54,817 nt of DNA from NCBI GenBank assembly GCA_003427395.1, contig BFEA01000009.1, forward strand, positions 5,965,890 through 6,020,706. Direction: 5' to 3'. A program made the position numbers and the translations under genes. The notes under the pieces are model-generated. The model had not been told where the DNA came from. It saw only the letters and a program-made list of their open reading frames with translations, and ran no database searches. This document shows, in pieces, positions 13,942 through 52,695 of the stretch; position 1 is the first letter of the stretch, and each line of letters starts with the position of its first letter. The stretch comes from Chara braunii. Its lineage: Eukaryota; Plantae; Charophyceae.

Positions 13942-13969
<28 letters not shown>

Positions 13970-13973
<4 letters not shown>

Positions 13974-19486: not shown

Positions 19487-19525
19487 ATACTTCCCCCTCT
19501 TTTGATTTAGCGGTTCAGCACCGAT

Positions 19526-19987: not shown

Positions 19988-21013
19988 TCACCCCCTACGA
20001 CCATCAAACTTAAAGTATCGAAGTGCTAAGCCAACCACTGCCTCATTGCTTCTCCCTCGAACCACCTGACGCGGTACAGGAGGTCTGGGTAACCCCTGAA
20101 AGAGCGTAATCCGGGTGTCCTAGATTACCTCCTTACCTAGCGCCAGGAGCCTATCCCGCTCATTCTCAACGACTTCTTCCGAGCACTCCCAACATCGACT
20201 GTAAATCAAATCGCCTTCTCGTTCAACTAGGAGGTAAATCCTAACATCATACACCTCAACTGCAAAGAACCGAACGGTGATAATATAAAAACGTATCTGC
20301 TCCCATCCGCTGTCCACCAACTCGTATGTCACTACTTCGTACGGAATCACTTCTCTCCTACCCAAGGAGCTTAACCTCTCGCAAATTTTCGCTAACACCT
20401 CGTCCGAAGGTCTGTTTCCTGCAAGAAATCTCTCTCTCCTGGCCTCTAGCTCTCACTCTGAGACGGTCGCATCTTTACTCATTCGCGCATCCTATTCATC
20501 CTTAATGGTCTTTTTGAGCTTGCCGTCAGTCTTGACTGTCCGAGCGAGTCTCACTACTGCCTCCCATCTGTTCTGCTCTAGCCCTTGGTATGGAACAGGC
20601 GGCCTAGGCAGACCGTCAAAGACAGTGATGTCGTCGCAGACCTCCACAGTCTTTCCCAAACTTCTGAGCCTCTTTTCCTCTTTTCTCAACACCCAAGCAG
20701 CCCGTCTCCAAGTCCTTCCGTATATACAGAACTCTTCCCTTTCTCTAGGCAGATATATACCGACGTGGTATACCCCAAAATCATGAAACCGCACGGTTAT
20801 AATATAGTATTGATTGCACTCGATCCCACTGTTCTGCACCTGATACTTGATCACTTCATACGGGAAGATCTCTCGCCCGCCCAAATCGCTTAATTCCCTA
20901 AGTACTTTCTCGTGTTCAATTTCGTAAGGACCTCCCCAAACTCCAAATCTCTGTCTCCTTTCGCTAGCTCTGCCTCTGGTAATGGCATCTCTCGCCCATG
21001 AGGTGTTTAACAC
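19988..21013 (-). pseudogene. Accessory ORF of the retrotransposon: two tandem paralogous ~160-aa domains, unknown function
   Basis: ORFs 20492-21013 and 20120-20398 are in the same frame and align (LSDLGGREIFPYEV/LSSLGRREVIPYEV, YIITVRF, GLPRPPVP, EAVVxLA). Confidence 0.7.
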
Positions 21014-22632
21014 TCCGCTGCGATTAGTGTCAGGGCTAGCAGGACTCTGTCAATGGATTCCTCCAAAAACGTATAGAATGTCTCAAAATCGTTTATATCC
21101 CTAAAGTCTTCAATATCTGATAGAGTCTGAAGGTACTCATTCCAATACCGATTGTGTGCCTGGAGTATTCTGAGAACCAAACTTTCTCCTATGATCTCCT
21201 CCAGATCTCTAGCTTCCTCTGCTTCATCCTCCAGGAGCCTCTTGACCTCCCTAGAAGTCTCTCGCCAGACCCTATTTAGAGGTGGCGCGTCAAAAGGGGT
21301 AACGTGCAGCGAATAGTTGATCAAGCACGCACTCTCTTCCCCTACCCAGAGTCCGGTCACTCGCGCCTTCCGTATGGCTCGTCGAGTGTTCTCCGCCTCT
21401 TCTATCACAGTTAATTTCTCGCGATGGACCAGTTGTATGACAACACAAGCGGTTTGCCCATTCAACCTTCCTGTTATACGCATATCACATTTCTCACTAC
21501 TCGTCCTCTTCTATCCCCGTCCTGACGTTCCCTCACCTTTCGTCTCCCTCTCCGATGTCACTGCTTCAGACACCTCGTCTGCTCTCCCGGTCGTTTCGAG
21601 CAAGCCCTCTCGCTCCTGACTAATATGAACTCTCCCTTTCACATTTTCCAGAAAATCAAGCATCCACCTCACGAAAAATTCTCTATCTTCCCTCGAAAGT
21701 CTTTGCAACGCCTTCGTTGCCGCTTCTATCTTACGCAACTCGCTCTCACTCTTTTTCGGTACACAATCCTGGATCTTGACGCCAAGCTCTCTGCCTAGTT
21801 TTACTACTGGTTTAATAATCTGATCATCGACTCTCTTTTTCCTTTCTTCCAGATCCTCCATCACCTACAACCCATCTTTCTTGTTCTCATGAACCTCCTA
21901 TCACATATTGCTCCTAGCTTCTGAGGGTGTCTCGTCCCTTATTATCTCCAAGCGCACCCTTCCTTTAACGCACACGATCACCTCATAAACCACCCAACTC
22001 TGTACTGTCAACTCCCTCAGTGCTCCTAGTCTTTGCTCCCGTATGACATCTTCTACGAGTTCTTTGAACTCGTTGTCCGACAATTCTTCCTCTATGCTCA
22101 CTCTTAAGAGGATCTGTAGGGTCTTCTTGTCACACGTTAATTGCCTAGAGACAACCCGAGCGTAGGGAAGACGTCGCCGAGGAGAGGGACTACTCGTCTC
22201 AGTTCCTCGAGTAGCTACTCGGGGGTTCCTCTCACTCACGCTCCTCCAGGACTCGGCCCCTCTGCGGTCCCACCAAAGTGAATAAGAGGCTCGAGGTCTA
22301 TATCGATACAGTTGCTGCTCGTGTTTCGTCATGACAGGGTAATCATACTCTACTCCTGGCCTCCGCTACCGTCTCATCGAAGAACAACTCAGCGCGTAGG
22401 TACCCTGCTGACCACACCATCACTCATAAGTTATCTTGGTCTGAAACGTGACACATTCGAGAACTCCCGGTCTATATTCTCGGATAAATTCCCTGGCTTG
22501 CAGAAAACTCTCCTGCTCTGTTAGGATGTCGTCTATGTGAGCTCTAAGTAGGACTGTAATCGTGAAGCCCTCGTTCACTAATTGCCTCCTCACACTCACC
22601 CCCGTAATCGTCCGACTTGGCATCTCCTCCAC
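21007..22632 (-). pseudogene. Accessory ORF of the retrotransposon (~540 codons in one frame, interrupted by TGA/TAG), unknown function
   Basis: ORFs 22420-22632, 21901-22332, 21511-21864 and 21007-21483 share one reading frame. Some segments are charged and coiled-coil-like. Confidence 0.55.
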
Positions 22633-25600
22633 TAGCTATGCCCAAACAGGTATCTCAGGTCCTCCAGCCCGATGAACTTGTCTTCTGCGCGTCTTCGACA
22701 ATAGTGAATCAAATCTGCAGGTTTTAGGCAGTCTATCCAGGAGGTAGCATCTAACAAGTCTCTCTCGATCTCCTTACCATGAGGTCCCCACCTTACGCAA
22801 ATTGAGTAATATGCTTCTAGGAATTGACGCTCTAGTCCCCGTAAGAACGCGTGCTGAGTGTGGTCGGCCGCTTTCGTCAACCAGTCCACGCCTCTGTAAG
22901 TTTGTTCTATAACAAACTCAGGTAACACCATCCGCCAGCTCCCTAGAGGATGGTAAATCTGTGGAGGAGAACCGATCACAATTCTCGTGGTAAAAGGCCT
23001 ACTTCCAACGGCGCTAAGCAGTTGTCTTCTCACTATTGTCTCTGCTAAAATCTCATATTTCCACCAGATCCTGCTAACGCCTACAAGGGTCAGGCCTATC
23101 TCTATATCTTTCTCCTTATCAAACACAAGATATCCTATACCCTTCACCTGCCGGGGAGACCCCTGGTCCTCCGTAATCACTGTCCACAAGAAGACCCCTC
23201 TCGCCAGCCAAGTACCGAAATGTCGGATCGGCACCCAATTTCCTACCTCTAAGCGCACCGGAAGCGGAACGTTATACCCCAGCGCTGTCTCTCTTGGCCC
23301 TATGAAATCTATCTCTCTACGAGCCTCTGACCCTCGTGTCACTATATACGTCACCCATATGTCCCAATCGCTCCTCATTACCGCATGTCGCTCAACCCTT
23401 GCCACTCCAATTCTCTCCGACACACTCGATCTTACGACACCACTACCTTCTCAGACAACTCTACCGGTTAGGCTCAAGACAATCGAGTAGGTGTTGTGCA
23501 CTCTCCCGACAGCTCCATGGAAGTATATGGTAAACTCGACATATCTCTGGCCTCTCCGTATCTCCAGAGCGTGCTCGATCATAAGTCCGGCGCGCAACGT
23601 CATCCATCGCCTCTTCTTCCCAGCCGCCTGTCTTATCTCGTCGTAAGGAGAGAGTCACTCTCAGTGTGTCCCTGTCTGCCATCCCTACCTGTCCTTTGTC
23701 TAAAGTTTGTCCCCGTGTTTACTAACCGACCTCCCTTTACTCCCCTCTCTAAGCTAGACCCGGATATACCCTGCTTCTAGCTGTCTCGCGCATCAGGCAT
23801 ATCCTCATCTCCGTCCTCGTCTAACCTCCGTCCCCATGGGATATCCTCCTGTCCCTCGGCCTGAAGGAGGTGTCCCCAGCCGTCCTCCTGCAGCGCCTCT
23901 CCACCTATCTGCTCCCGACGATCCTCTGTCACCAGCTCTCCCCAGCCCTGGTCCTGCTCTCCCCAAGGCTCTATCTCTCCAACAGTCTCCCACTCTCTAT
24001 CGTCAGCGTACCAGCCGAGCTCCTTCCTATCTGGATATATACTCTGGTAATGCTCCTCCAACTCCCAGATAGAGATGAGGGGAGTGGGTTTGTCACTGGG
24101 AGTCTCACTAAAGAGCCGTCCGACTCCCTCCAAGCTATCTACAGGTCTCTGGACCTCCCTCTCCAAGGCTAGCCAGAACTCTAAGGGCTGATGGGGGTAG
24201 AAGGAGTCCTGGTCTCCTGTGGGCGCTAGAGCTCGTATGAACTCTATAAGCTGAAGTCCTCTCTCCCCTATGAGCGGCCCTCCGATAAACTGAGCGTACT
24301 CAACCCAATCCTGGTCAGCCAGTCCTCTCCTGAATCCACCTAACTCAATACTGGCTGAATACGTCTCTGCAATGTGACTGAGGCCCCAGAGTTCCTCTAC
24401 CACAAATACAGGGAGTCCCACCCTCACTCGTACCGAGGGGAGGGGAAAAACTCCCCCGATCTGGAGGGTCGTCCTCGACTCGCCGATCGGATCGTGCAGT
24501 CCCTCTCTATCTGCACGGAGGCTATCTACCATCTGAGATAGGATCAACCTAACCTCCAGCTCACAGGACCAGAAACCATGCACCAAACCCTCAAAATAGG
24601 TCGTGGCACTTACCGATCGTGAATAGTAAATATGTCCTACGACCTCTATGCTCGTAGTCCCAGGTGCCCGCCAGCGCTGAGCATCCTGCTGAAATGTCTC
24701 CACCGCATACACCCACAGGTGCACGTCCTGCCCCAACCGTATGGATCTCCAAGCCGAATGGAGCCAGGGCCCAGCCACGCTCCTCGCTGGCAGATCGAAC
24801 TCTACTACGTCGGGCTCCACTGTCTCAGGCGGTCTGGGCCATCTGGCACTGTCGATCGCGAGCTCCACTCTATCTGCCTCCTCTACCATCGAATTTCCTA
24901 TAGCTACTGGTTGTCGTCAATCACAGCCTCTCTCGGTAGCCACCACTAGCTCTCCTCATCCGGACACCACCTCCTAGGTCCGGACGGCGACTCCTATCCT
25001 GGGGAAGTGAGCGTCGGTGGCGTCGATCTCCTCGTCGTCAGTCTCCCCCTCCGAGTCGACCCAGTCTGGCTTCCAAGTGCCCTCGTCGTCCTCACGCTCC
25101 CACCCCTCGTCGTCGAACTCGTCCTCGACGCGGTATGGTGGAAGACCTATGGACTGGTAATAATCTGTCAACTGATACTCAGGTATCAGTGTCCTAAACT
25201 CGTCACTCCACCAGCTCCACCAGTCATCCAAAAGAGGAGGCCTATGCACGTAACGCTCTCGGGTCCCGCTCGGAGTTCCCGGTCCAGCAAATCCCAAGTG
25301 TAAGAAGGAATTCCCCACAGGGGATCCTCGTCTGGCGCAATCGAACGGATCAGCTCCACGAGCTGGATCCTCTCGTCACCCCAACGAGGTCCGGCTGTTA
25401 CTAAGGAATAGTAGATGCAATGGGTGTCAAACTCGTCTCTCGAAAGACGCTCGAGCTCCCTAACCTCAAGATAAACCTCTACTATACCTCCTATCCCGCC
25501 GAAGACGGAGTCCACCACGAACGCTGGTACGATCGTCCTCAACCAAGTCCCTGCGTGCGGGAAGAACCCGTCGTCCGCTACAACAAGCTCTCCGTTAATG

Positions 25601-25995
25601 TGCAAGTGGGGTCTCCCGTGAAACAGGGTCAGCGGGTCCTGCCCGTCGTCCGTACGGAAGGCCTCGACCTCCGCCTGCAACAGTCGCTCCGCGGCGCAGA
25701 GGATGTCGCTCTCTCCCGACGTGGCAAGACTCAAGACAACCCCTTTGGTTGTCTCTGAATCCAGGTATAAATGCCCTCACACTAAACCTCTCCCGAGACT
25801 GCTATGGATCTCCCTACGCAACCACAACCAAGCACCTGGGGACACGATGATGGATCTCCAACTAACCTGTCCGTCCCATGCGGTCGGTCGGGACGGGAGC
25901 GTGAACTCCACTAGGCCTCCCTCTATGAGTTCCGGGGGCTCTATTTCTCATGCACGACCGGCTTCGTATGCCTCTATGGCTTCGGATGGCATCAT
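22632..25995 (-). pseudogene. Accessory coding region with three paralogous ~300-370-aa units, unknown function
   Basis: Units at ~25995-24974, 24889-23777 and ~23680-22632 share VEFxLP, WRSI, GH[LI]Y, PxFV[VI], GP..G and L[IV]E.IR.[LI]AP motifs; the third unit shares only some of them. Confidence 0.7.
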
Positions 25996-26242
25996 CCGAG
26001 TTGCTGTCGGGTGTAGGGGTAGTCCTATCGCGCCTGAAAAGGGGTATAATCCTAAGAAAATTTTGGCAGGGCTCCGCCTCCCCCTGTAGGGATGGGGTTT
26101 GGGAGGTGATCCCTAAGTAAGCGCTACCTAGCTACGTCCAAACTGACATCTATCTTTACCCTGACATCTATAAGGCAGAATCCCTAGCTTGAATTGAGCT
26201 AACGAGCCTCCTATTCAAGTTCCCTCGAATAGTAGGCACGTA

Positions 26243-26742
26243 CACAATTCGAGAGAAACCTGCTCTCGGCGCTCCCGCGCACGCTCTCAGCGCGCAGGGG
26301 CTGCCAACAACTTAAGAACCTACGAAATACTAAACTGGAACTCTTTCCCCAAATTTTTCGAACTTTTTTTTATTTTTAAGGAATTTTAATAGTTTAATTT
26401 AACAAAAATTCAAAATTAGTCTCAAAATTTGAGGTACTTTGGTCCTAGAATTCAAGGATGGTTAAAAATGTCAGAGGAAATCAGTCTCGAATTGCACAAT
26501 TCGAGAGAAACCTGCTCTCGGCGCTCCCGCACGCGCTCTCTGCCCGCAGGGGCTGCCAACAACTTAAGAACCTACGAAATACGAAACTGAAACTCTTTCC
26601 CCGAATTTTTCGAACTGTTTTTTATTTTTAAGGAATTTTAATAGTTTAATTTAACAAAAATTCAAAATTAGTCTCAAAATTTGAGGTACTTTAGTCCTAG
26701 AATTCAAAGATGGTTAAAAATGTCAGAGGAAATCAGTCTCGA
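26243..26742. repeat. Tandem duplication (~250 bp x2) in the AT-rich leader of the Gypsy element
   Basis: CACAATTCGAGAGAAACCTGCTCTCGGCG...GAAATCAGTCTCGAATT occurs at ~26243 and ~26495. Confidence 0.9.
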
Positions 26743-28184
26743 ATTTCCCTCGATTTCTCGACCTTTCCAAGGATTTTTACTGAATTTTTTTAAAAATAAT
26801 TCGCAAAAATACAATCAAAACTTGAGAAAATCCTTTTACCTCACCCGACCTTTAGAGAACTTAATTTTTTTACCCTTAGTAACTTCCCTTTTGTCTTTCT
26901 TCCTTATCTCTACCCTTTTCTAGAATTTTTTATATTTATCAAAATTGAATTAGAATTTTTTTTTTAAAAGGTAGAAATAATTTTTCTTTTTTTGTCCCTC
27001 TCCGTTAAGAGAGGTTTCTCTTATTAGTAACTCTGTTTCCTTTATTTATTTTTAATTAAAGTAATTTTTATGAATTTAGAAACTTTTTGGCAGCACTTCG
27101 CCTCCCCCCGTTGGGATGGGGTTCGGGCGAAGCCCTCAACAAACACTAAGAGATGCAGAAAATGATGAAAAATAATCCAAAAGATATAAACGTATTTTAC
27201 AAAATTTTTAATTATTTTTTTAATAATTTATATCCTTTTAAATAGCAGTATATTCAAAATTTTGACAAAATTTTCAAAATTTTCGGCAGCGATCCGTCTT
27301 CCCACGCGGGGATGAAGTCTGGGGCAGTCGTCCCTTAATCCACTGTCCGAAGAACCCGGAAAAGCGAACTTCAAACAATTATAAACGAAAAATTGCTATT
27401 TTAATAAATTTTTACTAATTTTTATCGATAAATATTTAAAATTATAGAGAAATACAAGGTTTTAAGCTTTCGCAATCATTTAGTTTTACTATAAGCTTTG
27501 GGGTTGCATTCGCCCCCTAAACCCTTAGTTAGGGTTTCTCTTAATTAGGGTTTAAGTTTCCTGCGCGCGTTCGCGCGCCCACCACAAACCCCCGTTTATC
27601 TTTAAAAAAAAAAAAATTGAACCCTTATAAACTCAAAAGGAAATCCTATCGGATTACTTTTGGTAACTGCCTTTGTTTTAATTTTAAATAAAATTACAAA
27701 AAAAATCAATTATTCCTTTGTTTTTCTTTCTTTTCTTATCTGTACGTCCCTGCCGTCAACCCAAACAGCGTCCGTATTTCCCGCTCAAAATGTCGGGAAA
27801 AGAACAAGGACCAACTTTGGTCCCAGCGGGTTTCTCCAGATTTTTCTTCTTCCAACAGAAAATTAATAAAAACCAAAATTCGTTATTCTCGAATTTAAAA
27901 TTGAAAAATTAAAAAAAAAACAATATCTCTCCTTTTCACCGTTAGAATTTCTCAAAAAACATATCAAAATGTTCGCCTCGTCGAGAGGACGAACTTTGTT
28001 CCCTACGAAGTTTTCACGAAAATGCGCGGATGATGAGATATTTGAAAAAAACTGCATTTGAAATTAATAAAGATTAGAAAATATCCACTAATCAAACTAA
28101 TTAAAACTGATCACCTCATGGCTAATCAGCCACGGCACCCCCGTTAATTGGGGAAGGCCGAGGCCTTGGGGGTGTTGTTCCCCT

Positions 28185-28201
28185 TCCCGGCAACGGCGCC
28201 A
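28185..28201 (-). promoter_or_regulatory. Primer-binding site complementary to the tRNA-Asp 3' end
   Basis: The minus strand reads CA-ACTT-TGGCGCCGTTGCCGGGA. This is complementary to the plant tRNA-Asp(GUC) 3' end ...CCCGGCAACGGCGCCA and is the PBS typical of Athila-type elements. Confidence 0.9.
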
Positions 28202-28205
28202 AAGT

Positions 28206-28773
28206 TGTGAGGAAACCCGGGGAGGGGAACCTACAGCTCGCTGAAGCCAGGGGCAATGCCGCCTGTCACTCGGCGCGCCCACTTCCGAGGTCCTCAGCGG
28301 CAGATAGGGTGTTGGGACTTATTATCGTCTGTTACCCCTGCTCGCAGAAGCACTTTAATCTAGCGTTATCAGATCATAATTCTCTTGAGTAATTTGATGT
28401 AGATTGAGCCTGATCATGAGGGTTGACTGTTTTGCCTCTAAGACAAATCACTCAAAAAAAATAAGTTCGATTTTAAAAGGGAGAGTGCACCAATCAGGCG
28501 AATCGATTTCCAGAGAATAAACAGTCCCTTCAGCATGCTTAATTACCAGTATGCCATGAAGCCAAATCAGCAGGCTCGGCCAGGTAGTTAATGGGTCAAT
28601 CAACGGGTCCTACTTACAGAAAGGGAATAGTTCATTCCACACACTCGATTTGCAGAGAGCCAGTGGTACTGATGATCTCCTGCCAGCAGCAGGGGTTGGT
28701 CCTACTCTCTCTTTCTATCTCTCTCCCTTCCGCTGCTCTCTCTCTCTCTGTTCTCTCGCTGTTCTCTCTCTTT

Positions 28774-28857
<84 letters not shown>

Positions 28858-28972
28858 NNNNNNNNNNNNNNNNNNNNNNNNNNNNNNNNNNNNNNNNNNN
28901 NNNNNNNNNNNNNNNNNNNNNNNNNNNNNNNNNNNNNNNNNNNNNNNNNNNNNNNNNNNNNNNNNNNNNNNN

Positions 28973-29061
<89 letters not shown>

Positions 29062-32000
29062 CTCTCTATCTATCTCTCCCCCGCAGTTCTTTCCATCTCT
29101 CTTCTATCAACTCTAACTTCTTCGCTGCCCCGTGTTTCCAAGTCCTCAGCCATGTTACTACTGCCTCTCCACTTCACACAGGATGAACCTGCCCGTGATT
29201 AAGGCCAGGAGCACGGGATTTTAGAAGTGTCTCATTTCCCCATACTTGTTGAGTTACCGTGCATTCAAAAGAATTGCGACCGCATGATCTCCTGGCATTA
29301 TGTTCATTCGATCGCAAAATCAAGATCCGTACGGTCAGAATTTGCGTTTTCAAGTCCTCTTTGAGAGTGTGGGGTCTGATCTACAATTGGTGCTGGCTGC
29401 GTAGGATGCCGGTCAACGTTTCGTCATCATATCATATTGGTATGCAAAAAAAGAATCAGTCCAACTTAACACATTCATCGGAAAAACTTTTCAGAGGAGA
29501 TGTTCATACTTTGTTTGACCTTTGATGGTTGCTCTCTCTGAATTCGACAGAACTAGATCAGAGAGTAGGATGAAGATCTGCACACGCCACTTTACTGTTT
29601 AATTTTTCCTCACCCATACGGCTCTCCCTCTCTGCACTCTCCCTCTCACACTCTGCGCATTCTCTCACACTCTGCGTATTCTCTCTCTCCCACACTCTCT
29701 CTCAGCCTGCTCCCCCTTGCGCGTAGGTTCCCAGTCTCGTCACTACCACTCACTCACGACGCAAGTCCCGTTTCACAATGATCCTCGCGAGCATGTGTGA
29801 GCCTTTCTCTCTCTCTCCCTGCATGTGTATTGCCTGTCTCTCTCCCTGTGTGTGTGTTTCGTGAATCTTTCTCTCCTTCTCTCTCTCTCTCTATATGTAA
29901 GGAGGCTTTTTACACTTGTTGTGTGATCGCATCAACCCTTCTCATGTGTCGCGGCCACTTTCACGTGCTGGTCGTTATACAGTGTCCATAAATGTGTTCA
30001 TGCAGTGGCAGTAAAAAAAAAAAAAATATTCAACTCTCTTTTACTTCGTGCATGCAGAGTGCTGAAACGGCCAGATCAACCCCCGCTTTTCTCCAAGTAG
30101 GAGGGCCGATGAGACGGACAGATTAGCGCCCAGTCTCCACCATGTATCTCAACCGCTTTAGAGGATAGATTAATGTCAAATACTCATCATGTGTTCGAAC
30201 AGCAACAACAACGAAGTTAACCCCCCCTGTTTTCCTCCGAGTATAAAGAGTGGTGGAACGAGCAGATCAGCGCCCGGTCTCTACCATGTATCTGGGCCTG
30301 CCTTAGAGGGTAGGGTCGGAGCTCATATTCTGCATAGTTTATCAACCGAAGGTCTAAACGTATTTGTGCCGCTTCTGAGAACAGATTTAAAGCTCCAAAC
30401 CTGGGAATCATGCCGTGGGCATACCACGCCCCGAATGCTAGAAGTATCTGTCGGGTTTTGAGGGCAGACTCAAAGCTCTTAATCGGAGTGGAATGCAACG
30501 AGCACATCAGACCCGAAAACTGAATGCTCAAAAATCATAATCGAAAGAGTGTACTGCGGGGACATCAGGTCCGAAAATTGAATGTATCTGCCCTGCTTTG
30601 GGGGCAGGTTCAAAGTTCATAATGAGAAGAGTGTACTTCGGGCTTATCAGGCCCGAAAACTGAATGTATCTACCCCGTTTTTTAGGGGAAATTCATAACT
30701 CTTCTCGAAAGTGTGCTGCGAACATATCAAGCCAACAATCTGTAAGTATTTGTCCCGTTTTAGAGGGCGAATTTGAAACTCATACTCCGAAGACTATGAA
30801 ATGGACAGATTTGAAACTCGTCTTATGAGGGGTATGCTGCGGCACATTACTCGCAAAAATCTGAATACAGTTGACCACTTTCGAGGGCGAATTCAGAGCA
30901 CGCTCCTTGAGAGTATGCTACGGCATATTACACACAAAATCCGCATACACTTGACCGCTTCTAAGCACGGATTCCGAACTCACATTCTAAAAAAAAAACT
31001 GCGGAACCGATATAACAGGTACTCACCCAAAACTCGGCATCAGCTCCATTAGACGACACATCCTTACCGATTCAGACGGCGTCACCAAGAGTCCGTCAAC
31101 CTTTCACCTGCGACTACATTCAACAGGCATTCGTTGCCTCCCTAATCATCGCTTGTAACGGGCAGCAAAAGCCTCGAACGGCAGACGAGCGACTCTAACC
31201 TTGACAGAGCTCCCATAGCACGTTGTTCTAGTGTACCCTTCTCTCGAGGGACGAACTCTCCCATTCATGCAGTGCACAACAGAACACTGTCTTCTCCCTG
31301 ATTCTCTCATCCGCTTCCGTTCCCCCGTCGATTTGTCGAATACCAGCAGCGCACATCAGGTGCTCTGTGTCCCCCTCTTGGCCACTGTTCGCACCTCTTC
31401 AGTCATCGTCAAGAGAGGGCTCCGCACACCTGGCACGTTTCCTCCTCCTGTTCCGAACTGGGCTGCCATGGGGGCGGGGTACACCTGGCAAGCTTTCCCC
31501 CCGAGTCACTCCCGTTCGAATCCCTTTCCATGTCAACGGGTCTCTCATATATGCAGTAGCTACCCTGGGCATGGCGTTCAGTGGACCAGAAGCACCTGAG
31601 AAAAATGCCGGCCGACAGGCCTGTAAACCTGGTGCCAACGGCATTCCGGGATTTACTAGCGGTACCAGTACTTCGGGTAACCAGTACTGGACATGGCCCT
31701 CAGTAGACCAGAGGCACCGAGAAAACGTAGGCCCATAGGCTCGAAAACCTGGTACCAATCGCATTGTGGGATTTACTTGCGGTACAAGTACTTCGCGCCA
31801 GGTCAAAGGTACCAGTCGAAAACACAACAGCAGTACCCGAAAACGATACCAGATCTCCACTACAGTACCAACAGCAACCCTGGGACAGTACCAGGAACAA
31901 ACAGTATCGCAGGTCATCCGCGTCACGGCCCAGGATCGACGTTAATAGGCTCGGTGTTCTGGATACCGTGGCTGCTCTGAGCCATCAATCGCAGCAGTTC

Positions 32001-33543
32001 AATGAGATGCACCGTACAATGAAACAAGTACCGTTCCAACACCGTGTCTGTCCCATACAATTTTCGGGGCTGAAAATTCCCAGTCCGAACTGCAGCAGCC
32101 TCAAACTGGATTGGAGATCCGTATTCGAAAGTACCATCGCCGAATCCATCGGTACCATGCCAACCCCGAACCAATATCAAGCGCGCAACACGTAGAATAT
32201 CGTCAAGTGCCGTAGTGCAGCGAAAATTTCGAGCCTGGCTCGAACCTGAGTGTCGTGCCTTTATACCGAAACTCAACCCATGCCGACGTCAAGGTAGTAC
32301 CACCCTGAAGATGGCAGCCGTACTGAACACGACAATAGTTTGTCAACCTTAAAAAGGCTCCGAACCGTAAAATAATTATCGTAGTCGCGTCGAAGCTGAG
32401 ATAGATTGCCATGGTGGTCCCGAACCTGAAAACGAGTTACCAAGGTCGTCCCTAACCCTGATGAAACATTCCGGAGTAGTCGTTCTGAACCTAATAATAA
32501 AACACCCCGATGTGCCCGAACCTGAAGCACGCCGAAGCCGAACTCGTGCTGCCCGGCGGTAATAATTCCGAACCTGTCCCGAGCCATTCGTGTCGAACCG
32601 AAGCGGTGATCACACCGACGCAAAAGGGTCGTGGAGCGCAATTAAACAACATAGCGGCAACGCCCCGCGTCCGTCAATCCCGCACTCATATCACACAGGT
32701 TACGGTAAAGTTAGAAATCAGGGAAATCAGGTAAGCCATGCGTACAAATCCCAATCTTCGCCATATAGCGGAAATCATCAGAATTGAAGTAAATGAATAA
32801 TCGGGGGTTAATTCCGACCGCGGATAAATGTAGTAAAATTACGCCCATCAGTTATTAATCATGGTTTTCCTTCATTCTTATTATTTTTATTTACTTTTCT
32901 TATTTCCTAATTTTTTTATCGAAAATAACAAAAATAGAGGCAATCTTGCCAAAAATAAATTCCGATGGCATTCAATGAAGCGTTGAAAATCCTTGGTTTC
33001 CCTTTTCTTTTTATTGTTTTCGAATTTTTTTCATACATTTAATTCTATTATCAAAAATGTCGATAATAGAGGGCGACCCTATTAAAATTCAAATATCAAA
33101 TAATTTGAATAAATTGGAAAATATCCCGTTTTTCTCTCCTCTTTTGTTGTCTTTAATTTCTTTTCTCATTCTTAATTTTAATATTAAATTTTATTAAATG
33201 TGGGGCTCCCTCCTCGCGTCCATGGGACACTGTGGAAGGGCCTCGTCAAGGCTCATCCTGAGTTAAAAGCCCCGCGGCCAGTCGTTGTCGGGACAGGCCT
33301 AGAGCGAGCGGAAAGGAGGTAGTAAGTAAGGTAACTGTGAGGGCGGCGAAGCGGTAACCCCCTTCGCCATTTCTCTAGGGCTAGTCCTGGCGGTTGACAC
33401 ATCCGAAATTAGGGGTGATCTGACTACCCCTAATTTCTCCCAACTGGTCGGATGAAAGCGCCGGCCGATTCCTCCTTAGACAAGTTTTCTACAGGTCAAT
33501 TTCCCGGTATTAGGGCGACCGACTGGCCCTCGGTCGCCCGACA
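28206..33543 (-). repeat. 5' LTR, ~5.3 kb
   Basis: Bounded by TG...CA (TGTGAGG at 28206; CCCGACA at 33543). One end abuts the PBS and the other is duplicated at 14097. It contains (CT)n, an N-gap and internal repeats. Confidence 0.8.
30400..31030. repeat. Degenerate ~78-bp tandem repeat inside the LTR
   Basis: Recurrent CATCAGGCCCGAAAACTGAATGTATCTG..CGTTTT.AGGGCAGA.TCAAA..TCATAATCG..AGAGT.TACTGCGG units. Confidence 0.65.
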
Positions 33544-34558
33544 GCGCTTTTACTGACTCATCAAAAGGTTGATCCCCGACAGTGTGTCCGGGATGTTAAT
33601 ATCTGATGGATAAGGACTCACCACATCGCCCCAAGTAAGCGACAACCGTGAGAAAAGTGGTCGACTTTACTCACACAAACCATGCAATCCTTGCAGANNN
33701 NNNNNNNNNNNNNNNNNNNNNNNNNNNNNNNNNNNNNNNNNNNNNNNNNNNNNNNNNNNNNNNNNNNNNNNNNNNNNNNNNNNNNNNNNNNNNNNNNNNN
33801 NNNNNNNNNNNNNNNNNNNNNNNNNNNNNNNNNNNNNNNNNNNNNNNNNNNNNNNNNNNNNNNNNNNNNNNNNNNNNNNNNNNNNNNNNNNNNNNNNNNN
33901 NNNNNNNNNNNNNNNNNNNNNNNNNNNNNNNNNNNNNNNNNNNNNNNNNNNNNNNNNNNNNNNNNNNNNNNNNNNNNNNNNNNNNNNNNNNNNNNNNNNN
34001 NNNNNNNNNNNNNNNNNNNNNNNNNNNNNNNNNNNNNNNNNNNNNNNNNNNNNNNNNNNNNNNNNNNNNNNNNNNNNNNNNNNNNNNNNNNNNNNNNNNN
34101 NNNNNNNNNNNNNNNNNNNNNNNNNNNNNNNNNNNNNNNNNNNNNNNNNNNNNNNNNNNNNNNNNNNNNNNNNNNNNNNNNNNNNNNNNNNNNNNNNNNN
34201 NNNNNNNNNNNNNNNNNNNNNNNNNNNNNNNNNNNNNNNNNNNNNNNNNNNNNNNNNNNNNNNNNNNNNNNNNNNNNNNNNNNNNNNNNNNNNNNNNNNN
34301 NNNNNNNNNNNNNNNNNNNNNNNNNNNNNNNNNNNNNNNNNNNNNNNNNNNNNNNNNNNNNNNNNNNNNNNNNNNNNTTTCCTCGGACGTTCATCGACGC
34401 ATCAGGAGGTTGAACCCCGACAGTCTGCCGATGATGCATTTGACTGATGGATAAGGACTCACCACATCGCCCAGAGTTAGCGATACCCTTGAGAAAAGTG
34501 GTCGACTTTACTCACACCAACCTTGCTGTCCTAACAGAATGTGTGCATGTATGTATGT

Positions 34559-34602
<44 letters not shown>

Positions 34603-34786
34603 TTTTGGGCGATGTGGTGTGAGTGAAGTCGACCGTTCTCAGGGGGTTCGCCAACTCTGGGCGATGTGGTGAGTCCTTATCCATCAGTCAAATGCGTCCT
34701 GGGCAAACAGTCAGGGTTCGACCTCCAAATGAGTCAATGGAAGTCAGACGAAACAGTCTCGTAAAGTCATGCTTTTTTTTTTTTTC

Positions 34787-34818
<32 letters not shown>

Positions 34819-34923
34819 GGTATCGCTAGCTCTGGGCGATATGCATCTTGGGCAGATTGTCGGGGTTCAATCTCCTGATGAGTCCGGTAAAAGTCCGACG
34901 AAACAGTCTGGTACAGTCATGCT
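33544..34923. mobile_element. Cluster of ~170-nt hammerhead-containing repeats (retrozyme-like): two minus-strand and two plus-strand copies
   Basis: Shared body GTGTGAGTAAAGTCGACC...GGGCGATGTGGTGAGTCCTTATCCATCAG followed by a hammerhead motif. Copies at 33544-33697(-), 34378-34538(-), 34607-34772(+) and 34818-34923(+, internally deleted body). Confidence 0.8.
34853..34910 (+). ncRNA. Type III hammerhead ribozyme, intact catalytic core
   Basis: Stem III CAGAUUGU/ACAGUCUG; GUC cleavage triplet (C34861); stem I GGGG-UUCAA-UCUC; CUGAUGA; stem II GUC(C)GG-UAAAAGU-CCGAC; GAAAC. Confidence 0.85.
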
Positions 34924-35424
34924 TTGTTTTTTTTTGTTTAGCGAATATGACACCATACACACACACACTGCCTTTTACATTATAATGCAACTGTTGACGT
35001 CAGCAGACAACGAAGCACTTGAAGATGTCAGCGATTCCAGTGCAGGGAAACCAATTCGAGGTACTTGCCCTCATATCATCATCATCATCATCATCATCCT
35101 CTCTCTCGCTCTCGATTCTCAAAAGTTATGCCTGAGGCTGGACTTGTGGCCGGAAGCATCAAGTGGACCGAAGGAGGCCGTGCCTCAGTTGCAGGGGATG
35201 AGAGTCGTTCGGTTGGGCTTTCCAAATGAGTGTGGGTAAGGCGCTGCGACTCTTGCACAGGGCCTGCATTTCATGAAAGACATAAAAAACCGTGGAAAAA
35301 CCTTTGCTGCATTGGCCCAGGTTCCCTCTTGGGAGTTGTTTGCCACCAGGCCTGAATATTATTTCTCACATGTCTGAATGTTGATTCATTGACCCTGTGT
35401 GTTTTGAACCCCTGACCCGTGTTT

Positions 35425-36173
35425 TGGTTGACAGATTGATTTATTGAAGTATCGATTGATTGATTGATCGATTGATTGATTTATCGATTCATTGGTTGAT
35501 CAATTGGTTGATTTATCGATTGATTGGTTGATTTATTGATTGATTGGTTGACAGGATGGTTGATAGATTGATTGATTGATTTATCAAATGATTGATTGAC
35601 TGAGTGATTGATTGATTGAAAGTCCGACTGATTGATTCACTGATTGGCCGATTGAATGACTGACAGATTCATCGATCGACCGACAGTTTGAATCGATCGA
35701 CTAACAAATAGACTAATTGATAGATTGATTGAGTAATTCACTGACTGACGAACTGACTTATTGATTGATTGATTGACTAACTTATCGATGGACTGACCGA
35801 TTGGTCGATTGAGTGACTGACTGATTCAATGATCGACCAACTGATTGACTGATTGATTGCTGGATTGATCAGTTGATTATTTTGTCGATTAATAGGTTCG
35901 TCAATTGATTGGTCGATTGAGTGACTTACTGATTCATTGATCGACCAACTGATTGAATGATTGAATGATTGAATGATTGAATGGTTGAATGATTGAATGA
36001 TTGAATGATTGAAGGATTGAATGATTGAATGATTGAATGATCGAATGATCGAATGATTGAATGACTGATCGATTGGTCGATTGACTGACTGACTGATTCA
36101 TTGATCGACTGAACGATGGAATGATTGAATGACCAACTTACTGACTAATTGATCGATTGAATGATTGATTGAC

Positions 36174-36233
<60 letters not shown>

Positions 36234-36553
36234 CGATTAATTTGTTGATTGATTGATTGACTGATCGACCGAATTGGTTGTTTGATCCATTGGTCGATTG
36301 ATTGACTTACTTGTTCATTGATCGGCTGACTGATTGGATCGATGGACTGACTTATTGATTCATTGATTGACGAACTAATTAAATGATTGATTGATTGAAT
36401 TATTGAATGACTGAATGATTGAACGATCGAATGATTGAATAATTAAATGACCGACTGACTGATTCGGTAAATTGATTGACTGGATCATTAACTGATCTAT
36501 TGATCGATTGACTTATTCATGGATTGATTGATTGATTGATTGATTCATTGACA

Positions 36554-36608
<55 letters not shown>

Positions 36609-36825
36609 CAATTGGTCGATTGAGTGACTCACTTATTCATTGAATGACTTAATGACTTAATGATTGAATGATTGAATGATTGAATAATTGAATGACCGAC
36701 TTAATGATTCGATAGATCGATTGACTGAATCATTGACTGATTTAATGATCAATGGATTAATTGATTGATTGAATGATTGATTGAATGATTGATTGATTGA
36801 TTGATTGATTAATTAATTAATTGAC

Positions 36826-36874
<49 letters not shown>

Positions 36875-36962
36875 AGTTGGTTGATAGATTGATTGACTGA
36901 TCGATTGGTCAATTGAGTGACTCATTGATTCATTGATCGACCGAATAATTGATAGATTGATG

Positions 36963-37023
<61 letters not shown>

Positions 37024-38549
37024 GTTGGTTGGTTGGTTGATAGATTGATTGGTTGATTGGTTGATTGGTGGATTGATTGATTGACTGAGTGATTCATTGA
37101 TCGAAAGACCGACTAATTGATCGATGAACTGACTGATTGGGTCGATGGACTGAATGGCTGATTCATTGATTGACAAACTAATTGAATGATTGATTGATTG
37201 AATAACAGACTGGGTGATTCAGTACATCGATTGACTGACTGATTGACTAACTGATTAATAAATTCATTCATTTTAATTTTCATTGTTGTCGATTGATGAA
37301 CTGATGTTTTCAACCCTGACCTGTGTTTTGGATGCTGAATGTTGTATATGACGGGTGTGTGTAGTTGTCGGCTGCTGCACCGTACAACTGTCGAGTATGG
37401 GTTGACCGATTAACTGATTGATTGACAAACTGATAGATAGATTGATTAATTAATTGATTGATTCATTGATTATTCAGATTTATTGATTGTATGATAGTTC
37501 AACTGATTGATTGACAAAGTGATAGACTGATGCATTGATATATCGACTGAATGACTGTGTTTCATCGTTGTTGGGTCCTGAACCGTAAAAGTGTCGTATA
37601 TGGACTGACTGATTGACTATTTGAATAACTAACTTAATGATAGATTGATTGATTCATTGATTGATTCATGGATTGATTGATTGTTTGATTGTTTGACTGA
37701 TTGATTGACAGACTAATAGACTACTAGAATGATTGAATAACATATTGACTAATTGACATAATGATTGACTGATTGATATATTGAAACAGTGACCGAGTGA
37801 GTGATTGACTGATTGGAGGACTGATTGACTCACTGGTCTTGGCAGTTGAATGTTGTCTGTCACGGGTCTGTGTAGTTGTCGGGTCCTGATCCGTGTAGTT
37901 GTAGAGTATAAACTAAGTGACTGACTGATTGATTGACTGATTGACTGGTCGATTGACTGACCGATTGACTGACCGATTGACTGATCGATGGACTGACTGA
38001 TTGATCGATGGACTGACCGATTGATTGTTTGACTGATTGATTTACAGACAAATAGATTGATTGATTTTTATATTGACTGACTGACTGACTGATTGACTCA
38101 TTTAATGATTGTTACACTAACTGCGTGATTGATTGATTGATTGATGGATTGACTAATCGCTTAGTCAATCACAAGGCTGATTGATTGACTAATTGAGTGA
38201 TTCATTGATTGACGGACTGATTGAATTATCGACTGGATGATAGACTGATTGATTGATTGATTGACCGATGGACTGACTAACTAACTGACCGATTGACTGA
38301 TTGATCGACAGTTTGATCGATGGACCGATTGATTGCTCAATTCACTGACTGGCAGATTCATTAATCGACCGAATGATTGAATGATTGACTGATTATTAGA
38401 TTGATTGATTGACTGATTGATCAATTGATTGATGGACCGACTGATTGCTCGAATCACTGACTGACTGATTCATTGATCGACCGAATGATTGAATGATTGA
38501 CTAATTGATAGATTGATTGATTTCTTGACCCTGTATGTTTTGAAACCTT

Positions 38550-39290: not shown

Positions 39291-42263
39291 GAGGTCGGAA
39301 CGCGATGGCGGCAATGGCAAACGTCGTCGTCCGTCCGTCGGTTAAGGTGCGGACAACCACCTCCCTCCAATCCACGCTACCGGTCACCGGTGAACTGACA
39401 TGTCCCTCGGAGGGGGGAAAATATCTTAAAAAAAAAAAAAAAAAAAAAAAAGGCCACGGAACATGACACCAACCACAGGGAACCCGCCCAAACGTGTGTC
39501 CGTTCGTTGGACCGTACCGGAGGATGAATAGGCCACAAGTGGAAATGTAACCTTTTCCAAAAATGAAAAAAACAAAAGTCAAATTCGAAAGTACCGCGGG
39601 ACACAGGCTCGGCAAATTCGGCGCGCACTGTAATTCAGGGTCAGCAAAAAACGGCTCGAAGGTACTGGTGGCTTAAAGCCAACGACCACGTCCACATGCA
39701 TGGCTTTCAAGCCCCCCTCAAAAAAATGCAGAGTTCGATCCCTCTGGGGATCGAAAAAAAAAATGGAACTATTTCTCGATTTATGCGTGTCATCCTTGCG
39801 CATACTAGTCTACAGATCCGCACGGAGAATTTTAGTCGCGCGATCTTTGAAATTTGACCGCGCTGGATCTGTTCAGACCCTTAGGGCTGCTTCCCAAAAG
39901 GAGCTAACACCAATAGGGTACCGTCGAGCTCGAGTCCAGCGCCACTTGGTGATAGCTTGATGCTGTAACCTACCGGGCTAGTTCGTTTTCATGTAAGCTA
40001 AACTCGCAACTCTTCTATTTAAAAAGTTGTTGCCCAGTAGGTCACCCAACTTTGGGACTCGACGGCCCCAATCTGCCTCACCTAACCAAACGACCGTCAC
40101 CCCATCATCTAACCGGCTGGAGCTTAGCCCGGTAGGCCCGATAATTCACCCCTTTAGTCGCTAATCCGACTTCGGACCCTGGACGAAGTCAAATTTCACG
40201 GCGTGGAAAAACATAGGCCTCTTATTCCTCTCGAGTTGAAACCCCATATTTGGCGCGTCCCTCTTTTATATGCCTACTTAGGCCCTGAATCGCGCGACTG
40301 CCATTATTTTAAGTAGGATACGTTTAACTTTGACATTCTCATGCCTGCGCACTTTTGCGGCATCGACAAAAGTGAAGCACTAGCAGTTACTGTCGTTACT
40401 CTCAGACGCCACAAACGTTTTGACTAAGTTCAAAAAAATTGAGTCTCTCAATCATAGGTTAGGTATTAATAAACTCTTAGCAAACGTTAGTCTCACCAAG
40501 TCCTCAAATTCAACAAAAAGGTCAGATAGCGGTCGACATTGAAAAAGTCTGAGTAGATACCTTTGTAATGGTGTCTTCTTCGACACCGTTCGGGCCGAAC
40601 CTTTGGCTAGGGGGTCCCGAATGTTTGAGTATTCGGGTTTGGGCGTTCAACCGAAACTGAACGCCGACTACCTTGGCAAAAACAATAAGCTCATGGTTGT
40701 TCAAATAAAACAACAATAACTATTGTTAAAAAAATGCGAATAGTAACACAAAAAATGCAGTTCCAACAACAATAATAACGGATGTTGCAACAACAACTTT
40801 TTCACTAACAATTGCAGCAAAATCCGACTTATTAGTTTACTCGTGTAACAATTGCAACACCAACAACAACATTATGGTCTCTCGTACAACATAATATGTC
40901 AATAAGGGAACAACAAAATCTAAGGTTGCGGAAAGAAACGAAGGAGTTACTCGCAAAATCATTGTAAAAAGAGAAAGAACAACTTAGGTTGAAGCAAGGA
41001 AGATATGGATTGGGATGACGGTGGAAATGAGGACGATCGGATGAGTTCCACCCATCCGAGTCGGGAATCTGGTAATGGGTTGGGGAAGGATCGTGATATC
41101 CAGAATCCGTGTTTAAGGAGAGGTAGAGAGACGAAGAACAACATGGACGACCAATAATGATTTAGGAAGAAGTTGAAAAAAAAATGGTAACGGGTCGAAG
41201 GGAAATGAGACTTTAAAGAATTAATAAGGAAACATACAAGTGAAATAAATAACATAGGTTAGTTATGAATTAGAAAAAAAGTAACATACATATGAAGAAG
41301 ATTACCAGTTGGCTATTCATAAGCAAACTATCCCCAAAAGGGACCTTGCTCTAAGACAACATACCCTCGATGCATTGGGAGAGAATTATAAGGAGGATTA
41401 TTAGTAAGTATGAATAAGTAATCAACTAATTTCACAAATGAGAAAAAAATACATTTAAGTCGAGAGAAGTTTCATACTAACGGACAAAAAACGAAGACTA
41501 TATATATAAAATCCCTGACTGTCTTCTTCATGAAGGAGACCAGTAGAACAAAGGCAATAAAAAAACAAACAATGAGAGTCGAAACCGTATTCTCTTACAC
41601 CCTTCCGGTTGGGCCTATTGCTTGAACTAACTTAGGAACAATCAACAAGCTTGAAACATCACAAGACAGATAAAGAAAAAAAAAAAAAATCCTAAGAAGG
41701 AATAAGAAAGGAAAGCATGAAATTTGAGGAAGCGCATAATGACAATAATTGTTTAAAAAAATAATAATAATAACGAGAAGATGAACTATTTTCGTCTCTA
41801 CATTCGACACATAAGTATTATCTTTCAAAAACAGTCACCCAAGAGACAATGGATTATATGACTTATTCAAAAGGTTGTGCATTACTCAAATTATGAGATG
41901 CTCCAAGTACAGGAGTAATATCGCTGGAGACTTGGAAGGATGGAAAAAAACTAGAGCAATTATTTCCAAGCCTAAGGGACTCGTCGGAGCAACAAGACAA
42001 AAGATGAACGAATCAAGGGGCTTTGATGGTAATATATTTAAAGCTTCAACTGAAAGGAATATGAAAAGTTAATGACAAACCACTCATCACTAACATGCCT
42101 AACACTAAAGTTATTTTAGAGACAACCACAAACAAAATAATCCTTATTCGGTAATCATCGTATATGCAGCTTTTAGCTTCAATTATGATTGTGGGCGATG
42201 CAAATGATGAGCGAGATGATGTCACTCACCTCATTAGTTTTGAGGATAATATTACGTAAATAG

Positions 42264-44269
42264 TTAGGCTACCAAAGTGGCCCGGAACCAATTTCTCAGT
42301 CAGGCCAAAACAAATATACAAATAAAATTATTCTTTATTTATAGGCTACCAACTGGGTCGCCCGTGTCATCCTATTTTTTCGGACGGCTTGACCGTGCAA
42401 AGACCAGGGAAGGTCCGGGAGATAGTTAACAACTGACACTATTTACAGGTCACTTTCAGCGGCTTAAGGTCCCCATCTAATGGCTGGATGGAGGTACTTG
42501 AAACCCCTTTCATAAGCTTCAGCCACTTCAGCGGTTTCAGGTCCCCACCTGAAAGTCCTGAAATGACCTGAAGTGGTCGAAGCTTCTGAAAGGGGTTTTA
42601 GGTACCCCCATCCAAATGGGGGCAACCGAAACCCCTTTCAAAAGCTTCAGCCACTTCAACGGTTTCAGGTCCCCACTTGCAATTCCTGAAATGACCTGAA
42701 GTGGCTGAAGCTTCTGAAAGGGGTTTCAGGTACCCCCATCCAACCATTTGAATAGGGGTATCTGAAACCCCAAAAGCTTCACCCACTTCAGCGGTTTCAG
42801 GTCCCCATCTGAAATTCCTGAAATGACATGAAGTGGCCGAAGCTTCTGAAAGGGGTTTCAGGTACCCCCATCGAAATGGTTGGATGGGGGTACCCGAAAC
42901 TCCTTTCATAAGTTTTATCCACTTCAGCGGTTTCAGGTTTCCACCTGAAATTATTGAAATGACCTGAAGTGGTTGAAGCTTCCGAAAGGGGTTTCAGCTA
43001 CCCTCATCCAAATGGTTGGACGGGGGTACCCAAAACCCCTTTCAGAAGCTTCGGCCACTTCAGCGGTTTCAGGTCCCCACCTGAAATTCCTGAAATTCCT
43101 GAAATGCCTTGAAATGGCTGAAGCTTCCGAAAGGGGTTTCAGGTACCCCCATCCAAATGGTTGGATGGGGTACCAAAACCCCCCTTTCATAAGTTTCGGC
43201 CACTTCAACAGTTTCAGGTCCCTACCTGAAATTCCTGAAATGACCTGAAGTGGTTGAAGCTTCTGAAATGGGTTTCAGGTACCCCCATCCAAATGGTTGG
43301 TTGAATGGGGGTACCTGAAACCCCTTTCAGAAGCTTCAGCCACTTCAGCGGTTTCATGTCCCTACCTAAAATTCCTGAAATGACCTGAAGTGGTTGAAGC
43401 TTCTGAAAGAGGTTCCAGGTACCCCCATCCAACCATTTGGATATGGGTACCTGAAACCCCTTTCAGAAGCTTCAGCCACTTCAGGTCATTACGGCGGTTT
43501 CAGGTCCCTGGCTGAAATTTCTGAAATGGGCTGAAGTGGCTGAAAAAAGAGGCAGCAAAAAAAAAAAAACATAAAACTTGTCCTCCAAACCACCCGAAAC
43601 TTCTGAAATGACTTGAAGTTCCTTCAGGCCATTTCGGCGGTTTCATACCACTTCATAATTTTTTATTCTGAAATTTCACGTGGTCATTAACCATTAGTGG
43701 AAGATCATAGCAAAAAAAAAAAAAAACAATAAAAAAAATTTTAAAAATATATATTATGCAGAAAAATAAACTGAACAATTTTTGGCTCAGAGTTACATCA
43801 AAATTCTGTAGCAGATTTATAATACAAAATCAAGTTAAAACCTTATTTTTTTATTTTTTTATTGTTTTAATTTTATTTACTCTTTATTTATTTTTTGCTT
43901 GGCAAGACAACTTGAAGTGGCATCGGGTCACTCTGACAGCCTAGGTTTATCTTGTATTTGGTAAAAAGTTCGAAGTGACCATGCGGCAAACGTTGTTTAA
44001 TTTATTTTTTTGCATAACGTAAGTTTTTTTTTAATTTTTCTAGATTATGAGTCGGGCCGCGCGGGGCATCTTATTTTCCTGAACGGCCCGACCGTGTAAG
44101 GCCAAGGAAAGGTTATAGCAAAGCAAAAAAAAAAAAAAAAAAAAAATCTAAAAAATCTAAAAAAGAACTATGTTATGCAGAAAAATAAAATGAACAATTT
44201 CTGCCTCAGGGTCACATTGAAATTCTTTATTTAATTAAAATAAAATATATATATATATACTATTTGACG

Positions 44270-46279: not shown

Positions 46280-46285
46280 TATGAG

Positions 46286-46336
<51 letters not shown>

Positions 46337-46440
46337 CATGACCGTCTCTCTTCCTCTCTCTCCCTCTCGACAAAAAATATGGTGGTGTTTCTTCCCATGT
46401 TGTAGTCGTTCATTCATTCTCATTGTGCATATTATCCGTT

Positions 46441-46509
<69 letters not shown>

Positions 46510-47098
46510 CCCATGATTGTCGCTCTCCCTTTCTCTCTCTCGCTCTCAAAAAAAAATGTGGTGGTGTTTCTTCCCATGTTATAGCCGGTCATTCATTCTC
46601 ATTGTGCATACTATCTATTTATCCCTGATTCTCGCAGGTGGACGACATGCAAAATGAAAATGAATCTTTCGCTAAACATGGGAAGATCACCCTTATAAAA
46701 TGGTGATGTATTTTTCCATCTTCTAGCGGAAGATTGATTTTCATTTTGGATGTCGTCCACCTATTGGGATAGGGGATCAATGGACGACATATGAAACATA
46801 AATGAATCTTACGCAATAATATGAAAAGAAACACCTCTATATTTTTTATATACAACAGACAAAAAACATGAAGGTATATCTTCCCAGGTACTATAGGAAT
46901 ATTCATTTTCATTTTGCATGCCATCCACCTGCCGGGATTGATAATATGTGGACACAAAACGAGCAAAATGAGAACGGATCTTTTACTAAACCTTGGGAAG
47001 ATACACCGCTATATTTATTGTCTTTTGTTCATGTGGTGAGTAGTGGATCGAGATGCATGGGCATCGCCTTTTTTTTTCTTCTCCCTCTCTCTCTCCTT

Positions 47099-52664: not shown

Positions 52665-52695
<31 letters not shown>

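Follow-up and report, generated by a model that had tools for sequence, protein, structure and literature searches.

Four hammerhead-bearing units and the state of their ribozymes

The window (the whole stretch of Chara braunii DNA that was analyzed, 54.8 kb) holds a giant Gypsy-type retroelement and a single clear host gene, an intronless dyskerin/CBF5 gene at 51082-52854 (+) that encodes 590 aa with DKCLD, TruB_N, TruB_C_2 and PUA domains. The dyskerin ORF maps to contig BFEA01000009.1 of NCBI assembly GCA_003427395.1, and every homologue retrieved for an ORF of the window carries the name Chara braunii. Four homologous units, here called A to D, lie within 33545-34935 (Table 1). BLAST and alignment found them at the coordinates given in a first-pass annotation of this DNA and found no similar sequence elsewhere in the window. 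Pairwise identity among the units is 69-86%. Read along the plus strand, the order is A (-), a gap of 680 N, B (-), (TG)27, C (+), (CA)14.5 and D (+), and the spacer from C to D consists of T13, CC and (AC)n.

Table 1. Coordinates of the hammerhead-bearing units, the adjacent Gypsy-type element and the features between them
Feature	Position	Strand	Remarks
Giant Gypsy-type element	13970-33544	-	bounded by 126-129-nt repeats, 99% identical
5' LTR start of giant Gypsy element	33416..33544	-	first 126-129 nt; truncates unit A
Unit A	33545..33697	-	TCTG at gap edge, body, ribozyme helix I, core UUGAUGA 33558-33564, 5' half of helix II
Unit A would-be cleavage site	between 33578 and 33577	-	
Assembly gap	33698..34377		680 N, length merely estimated; between same-strand B and A
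Unit B	34378..34538	-	fullest copy, from TCTG beside imperfect (CA)n to GAAA at gap; core CUGAUGC 34399-34405; 11.1 mutated
Unit B would-be cleavage site	between 34419 and 34418	-	
(TG)27 microsatellite	34540..34593		between 5' ends of B (-) and C (+), head-to-head (TRF)
Unit C	34603..34785	+	core CAAAUGA 34726-34732; GAAAC 34750-34754; ~22-nt tail; T13 34773-34785
(CA)14.5 microsatellite	34787..34815		between C and D (TRF)
Unit D	34818..34935	+	complete ribozyme, tail, T9 34927-34935; then ~21 nt and (CA)5
Complete type III hammerhead of D	34853..34910	+	Rfam RF00008 and fold

The units had been described as lacking an ORF, LTR or PBS, and this is borne out: the listed ORFs that cross the gap consist of translated N, and since the units are non-coding the gap puts no reading frame at stake. 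A hairpin proposed for the body (ATCGCT/GGCGAT, ACCAC/GTGGT) was also seen, in the minimum free energy (MFE) fold of unit B. Whole-unit folds are not more stable than those of shuffled sequences (z -0.5 and +0.7), and in the context of the whole unit the ribozyme fold is not the MFE structure. A central segment of 29 nt is identical in A (33619-33647, -), B (34459-34487, -) and C (34659-34687, +), despite an overall identity of only ~70-77% among these three copies, which points to constraint on that segment in the source elements. It may represent an alternative inactive fold or a protein-binding site. The segment contains CAUCAG, able to pair with the ribozyme core CUGAUG, and is the part of the unit best covered by RNA reads.

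According to the first-pass annotation each unit ends in a hammerhead. The four core heptamers are exactly as it listed them, but the motif is complete in D only, the other three being truncated or mutated in the core. D has an open-ended helix III of 8 bp (34853-34860 with 34903-34910), the cleavage triplet GUC (34859-34861, predicted cut between 34861 and 34862), a helix I whose 5 bp close a loop of 3 nt, the core CUGAUGA (34875-34881), a helix II of 3+2 bp with one bulged C, and GAAA (34900-34903). D thus shows the CUGANGA...GAAA core, the NUH triplet and the three helices of a hammerhead, with I and II loop-closed and III open, and the open helix III makes it type III. The Rfam model RF00008 (Hammerhead_3) scores 36.1 bits on D, below the gathering score of 48.5, with an E-value of 1.3e-5 over 2 kb and 3.7e-4 over the whole window. 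At gathering thresholds Rfam gave zero matches in the window, and scans by E-value of the window and of three further Chara loci (L002-L004) gave no further hammerhead. The MFE structure of the isolated 59 nt of D approximates the hammerhead three-way junction, at -15.8 kcal/mol. By core, triplet and fold, the motif of D is a sound type III hammerhead, of which cleavage itself is a prediction.

Unit A stops inside helix II, and it lacks the 3' half of this helix and the GAAA because it ends at 33545 against the edge of the Gypsy LTR. In B the core carries A9>C and the 10.1-11.1 pair is lost, the gap starting directly after GAAA, and in C, besides two changes in the core, the base of helix I is mismatched and helix II is poor. 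To judge from these sequences, one ribozyme (D) is intact and three (A, B and C) are dead, and the copies appear to be decaying relics. Across six ribozyme sequences (the four here and two from another locus) there are zero compensatory pairs, not better than in shuffles, and the ribozyme register is supported trivially at most by this test; with no covariation, core identity and the RNA reads are what speaks for the motif.

Ends of the units, the assembly gap and the Gypsy insertion

Units C and D have a common 3' end, consisting of GAAACAG, a tail of ~22 nt and a run of T (13 in C, 9 in D). Their 5' ends are staggered, at ~27 in C and ~56 in D when counted in unit positions from the start of B (position 1), where TCTG adjoins an imperfect (CA)n. 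Unit D has a 26-nt internal deletion besides its 5' truncation, and on the 5' side of C 13 nt of an internal segment occur a second time, joined at a microhomology of GTGGTG, so that this junction looks like a template switch. All assembled unit junctions abut (CA)n or (TG)n, and B and C form a head-to-head inverted pair, with (TG)n between their 5' ends. A fixed 3' end, staggered 5' ends and a template-switch-like junction would together be the signature of cDNA primed at the target site from the 3' end of a linear RNA. Since each of the four copies reaches beyond the cleavage site on its upstream side, their templates were not cut at this ribozyme.

The first-pass annotation had instead proposed head-to-tail tandem monomers, on the grounds that the sequence after GAAACAG resembles the start of the unit body. 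No tandem with the period of the unit is assembled (TRF), and the resemblance proved weak: local alignments of the two tails against the two heads gave shuffle p values of 0.02-0.36 and chose two competing registers, CATG.TTTG or GTAAAGTC. The tail matches the post-ribozyme sequence of a sister family found in another Chara locus at least about as well as it matches the unit head (17/25 with one gap, in a hand alignment with the first ~25 nt after the hammerhead of that (TA)n-targeted family in L002). On this evidence the tail looks like a conserved 3' module and not like the start of a next monomer.

It is possible that the gap hides more monomers, as had also been proposed. Its edges, GAAA on the side of B and TCTG on the side of A, are 3 nt apart in unit phase, so that only CAG is lacking for the junction that C and D show, and by our own estimate two independent contig ends would match in phase to this degree with a chance of ~4%. 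The same match is also expected if a microsatellite fills the gap, as the 5' TCTG of B itself abuts (CA)n.

The LTR stretch that truncates unit A is 99% identical to 13970-14098 and 84% identical to an LTR start in another Chara locus (L004:2661-2727), where a related element carries the same accessory ORF 7.3 kb downstream of this point. Between the two repeats in the window lie minus-strand ORFs with reverse-transcriptase matches (at 15080-16248) and 14 kb of homology to other giant elements, and position 33544 is therefore the outer edge of a Gypsy 5' LTR. The region also contains long ORFs without Pfam domains, with homologues only among Chara braunii proteins. Going by the sequence of this junction, the Gypsy element is inserted into copy A after the arrival of A and is hence the younger of the two, which is the relative date that the locus offers. 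Its 3' LTR appears to be truncated after ~129 bp, and no target site duplication (TSD) of the insertion was seen by eye (GCGCT vs CTCTC).

Within the 5' region of the Gypsy element there is a direct tandem duplication of 251 bp (26243-26745, 96% identity). In the L004 locus a eukaryotic LSU rRNA fragment (812-1079, -; model positions 675-954) scores 66.7 bits, above gathering, and lies upstream of the Gypsy LTR start; a weak match to a eukaryotic LSU rRNA fragment is also found in the window (9987-10025, -; 23.6 bits). Directly left of the Gypsy repeat, 13737-13970 comprises two tandem units of ~107 bp split by (CT)n. These were considered as decayed or permuted hammerhead halves, or as the missing 3' part of A, on a likeness seen by eye, and were rejected since neither Rfam nor the covariance model supports it.

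Related elements and transcripts

Nine other Chara loci (L001-L009, 213 kb, mostly giant Gypsy), retrieved via the Gypsy and dyskerin proteins, contain no copy of the unit family, and no Penelope-like ORF was found in these loci or in the window, 268 kb altogether. A covariance model built from the six ribozymes returned only its training sequences over the same 268 kb. Exact-pattern scans for the conserved body segment gave no match in metagenome contigs (29 nt) or in prokaryote genome contigs (24 nt). With no further copy in the Chara loci, the anatomy of the family rests on the four copies and the reads. One of the nine loci (L002:1300-2900) carries a stack of the second short element family mentioned above. 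Its hammerhead, ~80% similar to that of D, stands at the 5' end and is followed by a body of ~90 nt; several of its copies are 5'-truncated, one starting near the cleavage site. Given this similarity, the ribozyme module is common to more than one family.

Transcripts were sought in one raw oligo-dT run, of which ~6% was searched with a 171-nt reference of unit C. In total 235 reads match this reference at 80% identity or more: 2 at 99% or above, 11 at 95-99%, 68 at 90-95% and 154 below 90%. To go by the 13 reads that reach 95%, the RNA would come from the species of the window or a close relative. Many diverged members of the family are present in poly(A)+ RNA. Mate directions are about equal and most reads run on into sequence unlike C, their loose ends revealing sub-families with other 5' parts on the same central segment. 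It is possible that the unit RNA stems in part from passive read-through transcription or from DNA carry-over.

The reads restore the core that is dead in unit C: 34727 is changed from A to T in 44/44 reads and 34728 from A to G in 37/44, which gives CUGAUGA. They also change A to G at 34713, at the base of the helix I of C, and four further read-majority changes produce a perfect helix II of 5 bp, the read-majority ribozyme having an energy of -18.4 kcal/mol in the hammerhead fold. No back-joined junctions, circular or tandem, were found in the reads over unit C, a weak result given oligo-dT priming, a depth of ~45 over the ribozyme and a 171-nt reference. Nor was there a pile-up of read ends between 34712 and 34713 in this same library, which is blind to small non-adenylated circles. 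No sequencing run shared more than 5% of the words of the stretch, and three such runs in the form of Logan contigs contained nothing of unit C and had probably been picked up through microsatellite words.

Relation to known retroelements and remaining features of the window

The copies, their states and flanks and the family RNA, as observed, are in our view best explained (with a probability of roughly 0.6) if the units are non-autonomous passengers, or heavily 5'-truncated 3' ends, of hammerhead-bearing Chlamys-type Penelope-like elements (PLEs). The locus would then hold four old insertions of a short (~200 nt) non-coding retroelement in (CA)n repeats. We infer a Penelope-like partner, target-primed copying and a role for the ribozyme along the following lines. 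The RNA of the element would be composed of the conserved central segment, the type III hammerhead and a U-rich tail of ~22 nt. A Penelope-like reverse transcriptase/endonuclease (RT/EN) would nick (CA)n microsatellites and prime cDNA at the 3' tail of this RNA, and incomplete copying together with template switching would leave 5'-truncated copies in inverted or adjacent clusters. The hammerhead may serve to trim longer or multimeric transcripts between GUC and G, and copy A would later have been split by the giant Gypsy insertion.

In Craig et al. (2021, PMC8557442), Chlamys PLEs, which are of the N-terminal EN+ type, are reported at very high copy number in C. braunii, and two Chlamys-type subclades of this species carry canonical hammerheads, one of them called 3'-HHR. 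The paper also describes how insertion at (CA)n and (C)n obscures TSDs, and attributes to PLEs a tail of 30-40 bp, frequent 5' truncation, partial tandems and, at the 5' end, an inverted copy that is 5'-truncated. The units at our locus resemble these families (Chlamys-2_cBra and PLE-X-like, as portrayed there) in their species, in a canonical hammerhead near the 3' end, in (CA)n insertion that hides TSDs, in 5' truncation together with an inverted neighbour that is itself 5'-truncated, and in the short tail that follows the repeat. Here these traits take the form of the (CA)n/(TG)n junctions, the common 3' end of C and D with variable 5' truncation, and the inverted neighbours B and C. They differ in being ~200 nt long, without an RT/EN ORF in the unit or nearby, and in ending in a T run, which that paper does not describe; its text names no type for the hammerheads of the published families.

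Non-autonomous Chlamys elements of Chlamydomonas (e.g. MRC1) are further relatives in kind. According to Craig et al. (2021, PMC8557442), they are short non-coding passengers, often multicopy head-to-tail, whose 3' ends are common with those of autonomous Chlamys families; they belong to another alga, and no hammerhead is reported for them. The first-pass annotation had considered that the copies might be only termini of an already described Penelope element. Their anatomy comes close to the Chlamys hallmarks, while the link to a described element is by hallmark and not by sequence.

Several observations run against a Chlamys origin. The 3' T run, not reported for Chlamys, would also fit a Pol III terminator; no PLE ORF is present in the 268 kb; the gap edges are 3 nt apart, as at a direct tandem junction; compensatory covariation is absent among the ribozymes; and every copy continues upstream of the cleavage site.

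The first-pass annotation took the units for a candidate minimal retrozyme or circular RNA element. As short non-coding elements with a type III hammerhead they are retrozyme-like in a broad sense, but no assembled tandem, no fold more stable than shuffles, and no back-joined junctions or cleavage ends in the reads were found. A true non-LTR retrozyme of type III would form head-to-tail arrays (one of them in the gap) and self-cleaved monomers of ~170-200 nt, closed into circles by tRNA ligase and copied by rolling-circle reverse transcription, as do animal retrozymes of 170-400 nt (PMC7229834). We regard this as unlikely. Units A and B are co-oriented and start with TCTG, the same four letters that follow directly on GAAACAG in C and D, but C and D end in a T run and a microsatellite and not in a next monomer, the similarity of head and tail is weak and in two registers, and no tandem is assembled. 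The phase match of the gap edges (~4% by chance) would favour an array, but it arises equally from a microsatellite-filled gap. Family RNA with an intact core is present, although the reads, with the weakness due to oligo-dT priming, low depth and the 171-nt reference, include neither back-joined junctions nor ends at the cleavage site. The stagger of the 5' truncations is indicative of a linear template whose 3' end is fixed, and the unit folds are not more stable than shuffles. Still somewhat less probable is an active system in which the gap is a tandem array, monomers of ~200 nt are circularised and PLE machinery copies the circles into (CA)n.

Metazoan non-LTR retrozymes (Cervera & de la Pena 2020, PMC7229834; Li et al. 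2026, 10.64898/2026.07.22.740005) are likewise short (170-400 nt) and non-coding, with a hammerhead and without LTR, PBS or PPT. They coexist with PLEs and are proposed to be PLE-derived, as are the units here, and it has recently been argued that they are non-autonomous PLE derivatives (bioRxiv 10.64898/2026.07.22.740005). They possess type I hammerheads, tandem multimers and highly self-paired circRNAs (PMC7229834; 10.64898/2026.07.22.740005), whereas the units from this streptophyte alga are of type III, with no assembled tandem, ordinary fold stability and no evidence of circles in the reads. With the LTR retrozymes of plants (Cervera et al. 2016, PMC4918200) the units have in common a type III hammerhead, the lack of coding capacity and the green lineage. 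Those elements have two LTRs of ~300-400 bp, each with a hammerhead, a tRNA-Met PBS, a PPT and 4-bp TSDs, and give rise to a circle of 600-800 nt that is mobilised by Ty3/Gypsy (PMC4918200). At our units there are no flanking direct LTRs, and PBS, PPT and a 4-bp TSD were not seen in the unit or at its edges; while Gypsy mobilises the plant LTR retrozymes, the adjacent Gypsy element here merely interrupts copy A. The combination of a type III ribozyme with a non-LTR context, which the first-pass annotation did not recognise, is real.

The T runs of C (13) and D (9), which a Chlamys origin leaves unexplained, are what a Pol III terminator would look like, and could indicate a Pol III-transcribed, SINE-like element with a chance hammerhead, mobilised by a LINE, whose head-to-head pair arose by twin priming. 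Although 5' truncation and inversion also occur with LINE machinery, and there are weak U6-like matches in the window, we consider such an origin improbable: ARAGORN found no tRNA-like part, convincing A or B boxes were not seen by eye, a poly(A) or LINE-type tail is absent, and both (CA)n targeting and the hammerhead are reported for C. braunii Chlamys PLEs (PMC8557442). A reading of the body and helix I as Pol III A and B boxes was tried and rejected, being no more than a resemblance by eye. Local DNA duplication or inversion of one old insertion, without repeated retrotransposition at the site, would suit four copies within 1.4 kb with similar pairwise identities (69-86%), but is very improbable, since 5' ends and microsatellite junctions differ from copy to copy while the 3' end is common, and since diverged relatives in the RNA reads indicate a dispersed family.

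Overall, we take the locus to be a decaying cluster of microsatellite-targeted insertions and not a demonstrated tandem or circular-RNA system. Its pairing of a type III ribozyme with insertion of a PLE-like, non-LTR kind, in a streptophyte alga, represents a variation on known kinds. Hammerhead-bearing PLEs of Chara braunii are already published; in the literature we found no report of short non-coding type III-hammerhead passengers that target microsatellites. If the units are PLE-dependent and retrozyme-like, a ribozyme of plant type would stand in a PLE, non-LTR context in those algae that are most closely related to land plants, and this would bear on the origin of plant retrozymes and of viroid-like hammerheads. 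Were the reading as an active circular system true, the family would be a living intermediate, standing between animal retrozymes (type I, PLE-linked) and those of land plants (type III, with LTRs). The locus itself adds only a decayed example, and its value lies in the intact ribozyme of D with an adjacent natural dead-core control in C.

The rest of the window contains further repeats. A degenerate satellite of 3.1 kb derived from (GATT)n, 64-70% self-similar, lies ~500 nt to the right of D (35424-38529). At 42458-43544 and 46283-46623 there are tandem palindromic units of ~130-170 bp that on both strands give matches to many miRNA-precursor models of plants, none of which reaches gathering (best MIR9486, 57.7 bits vs 100); these arrays are probably MITE-like hairpin repeats. 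Partial U6 snRNA-like sequences, below the threshold of 44 bits, were found at 39758-39803 (-, 29.9 bits) and 49344-49397 (+, 19.7 bits), and also in the L002 locus (2263-2310, -, 25.4 bits). The stretches 39598-39677 and 48700-48780 are 81% alike.
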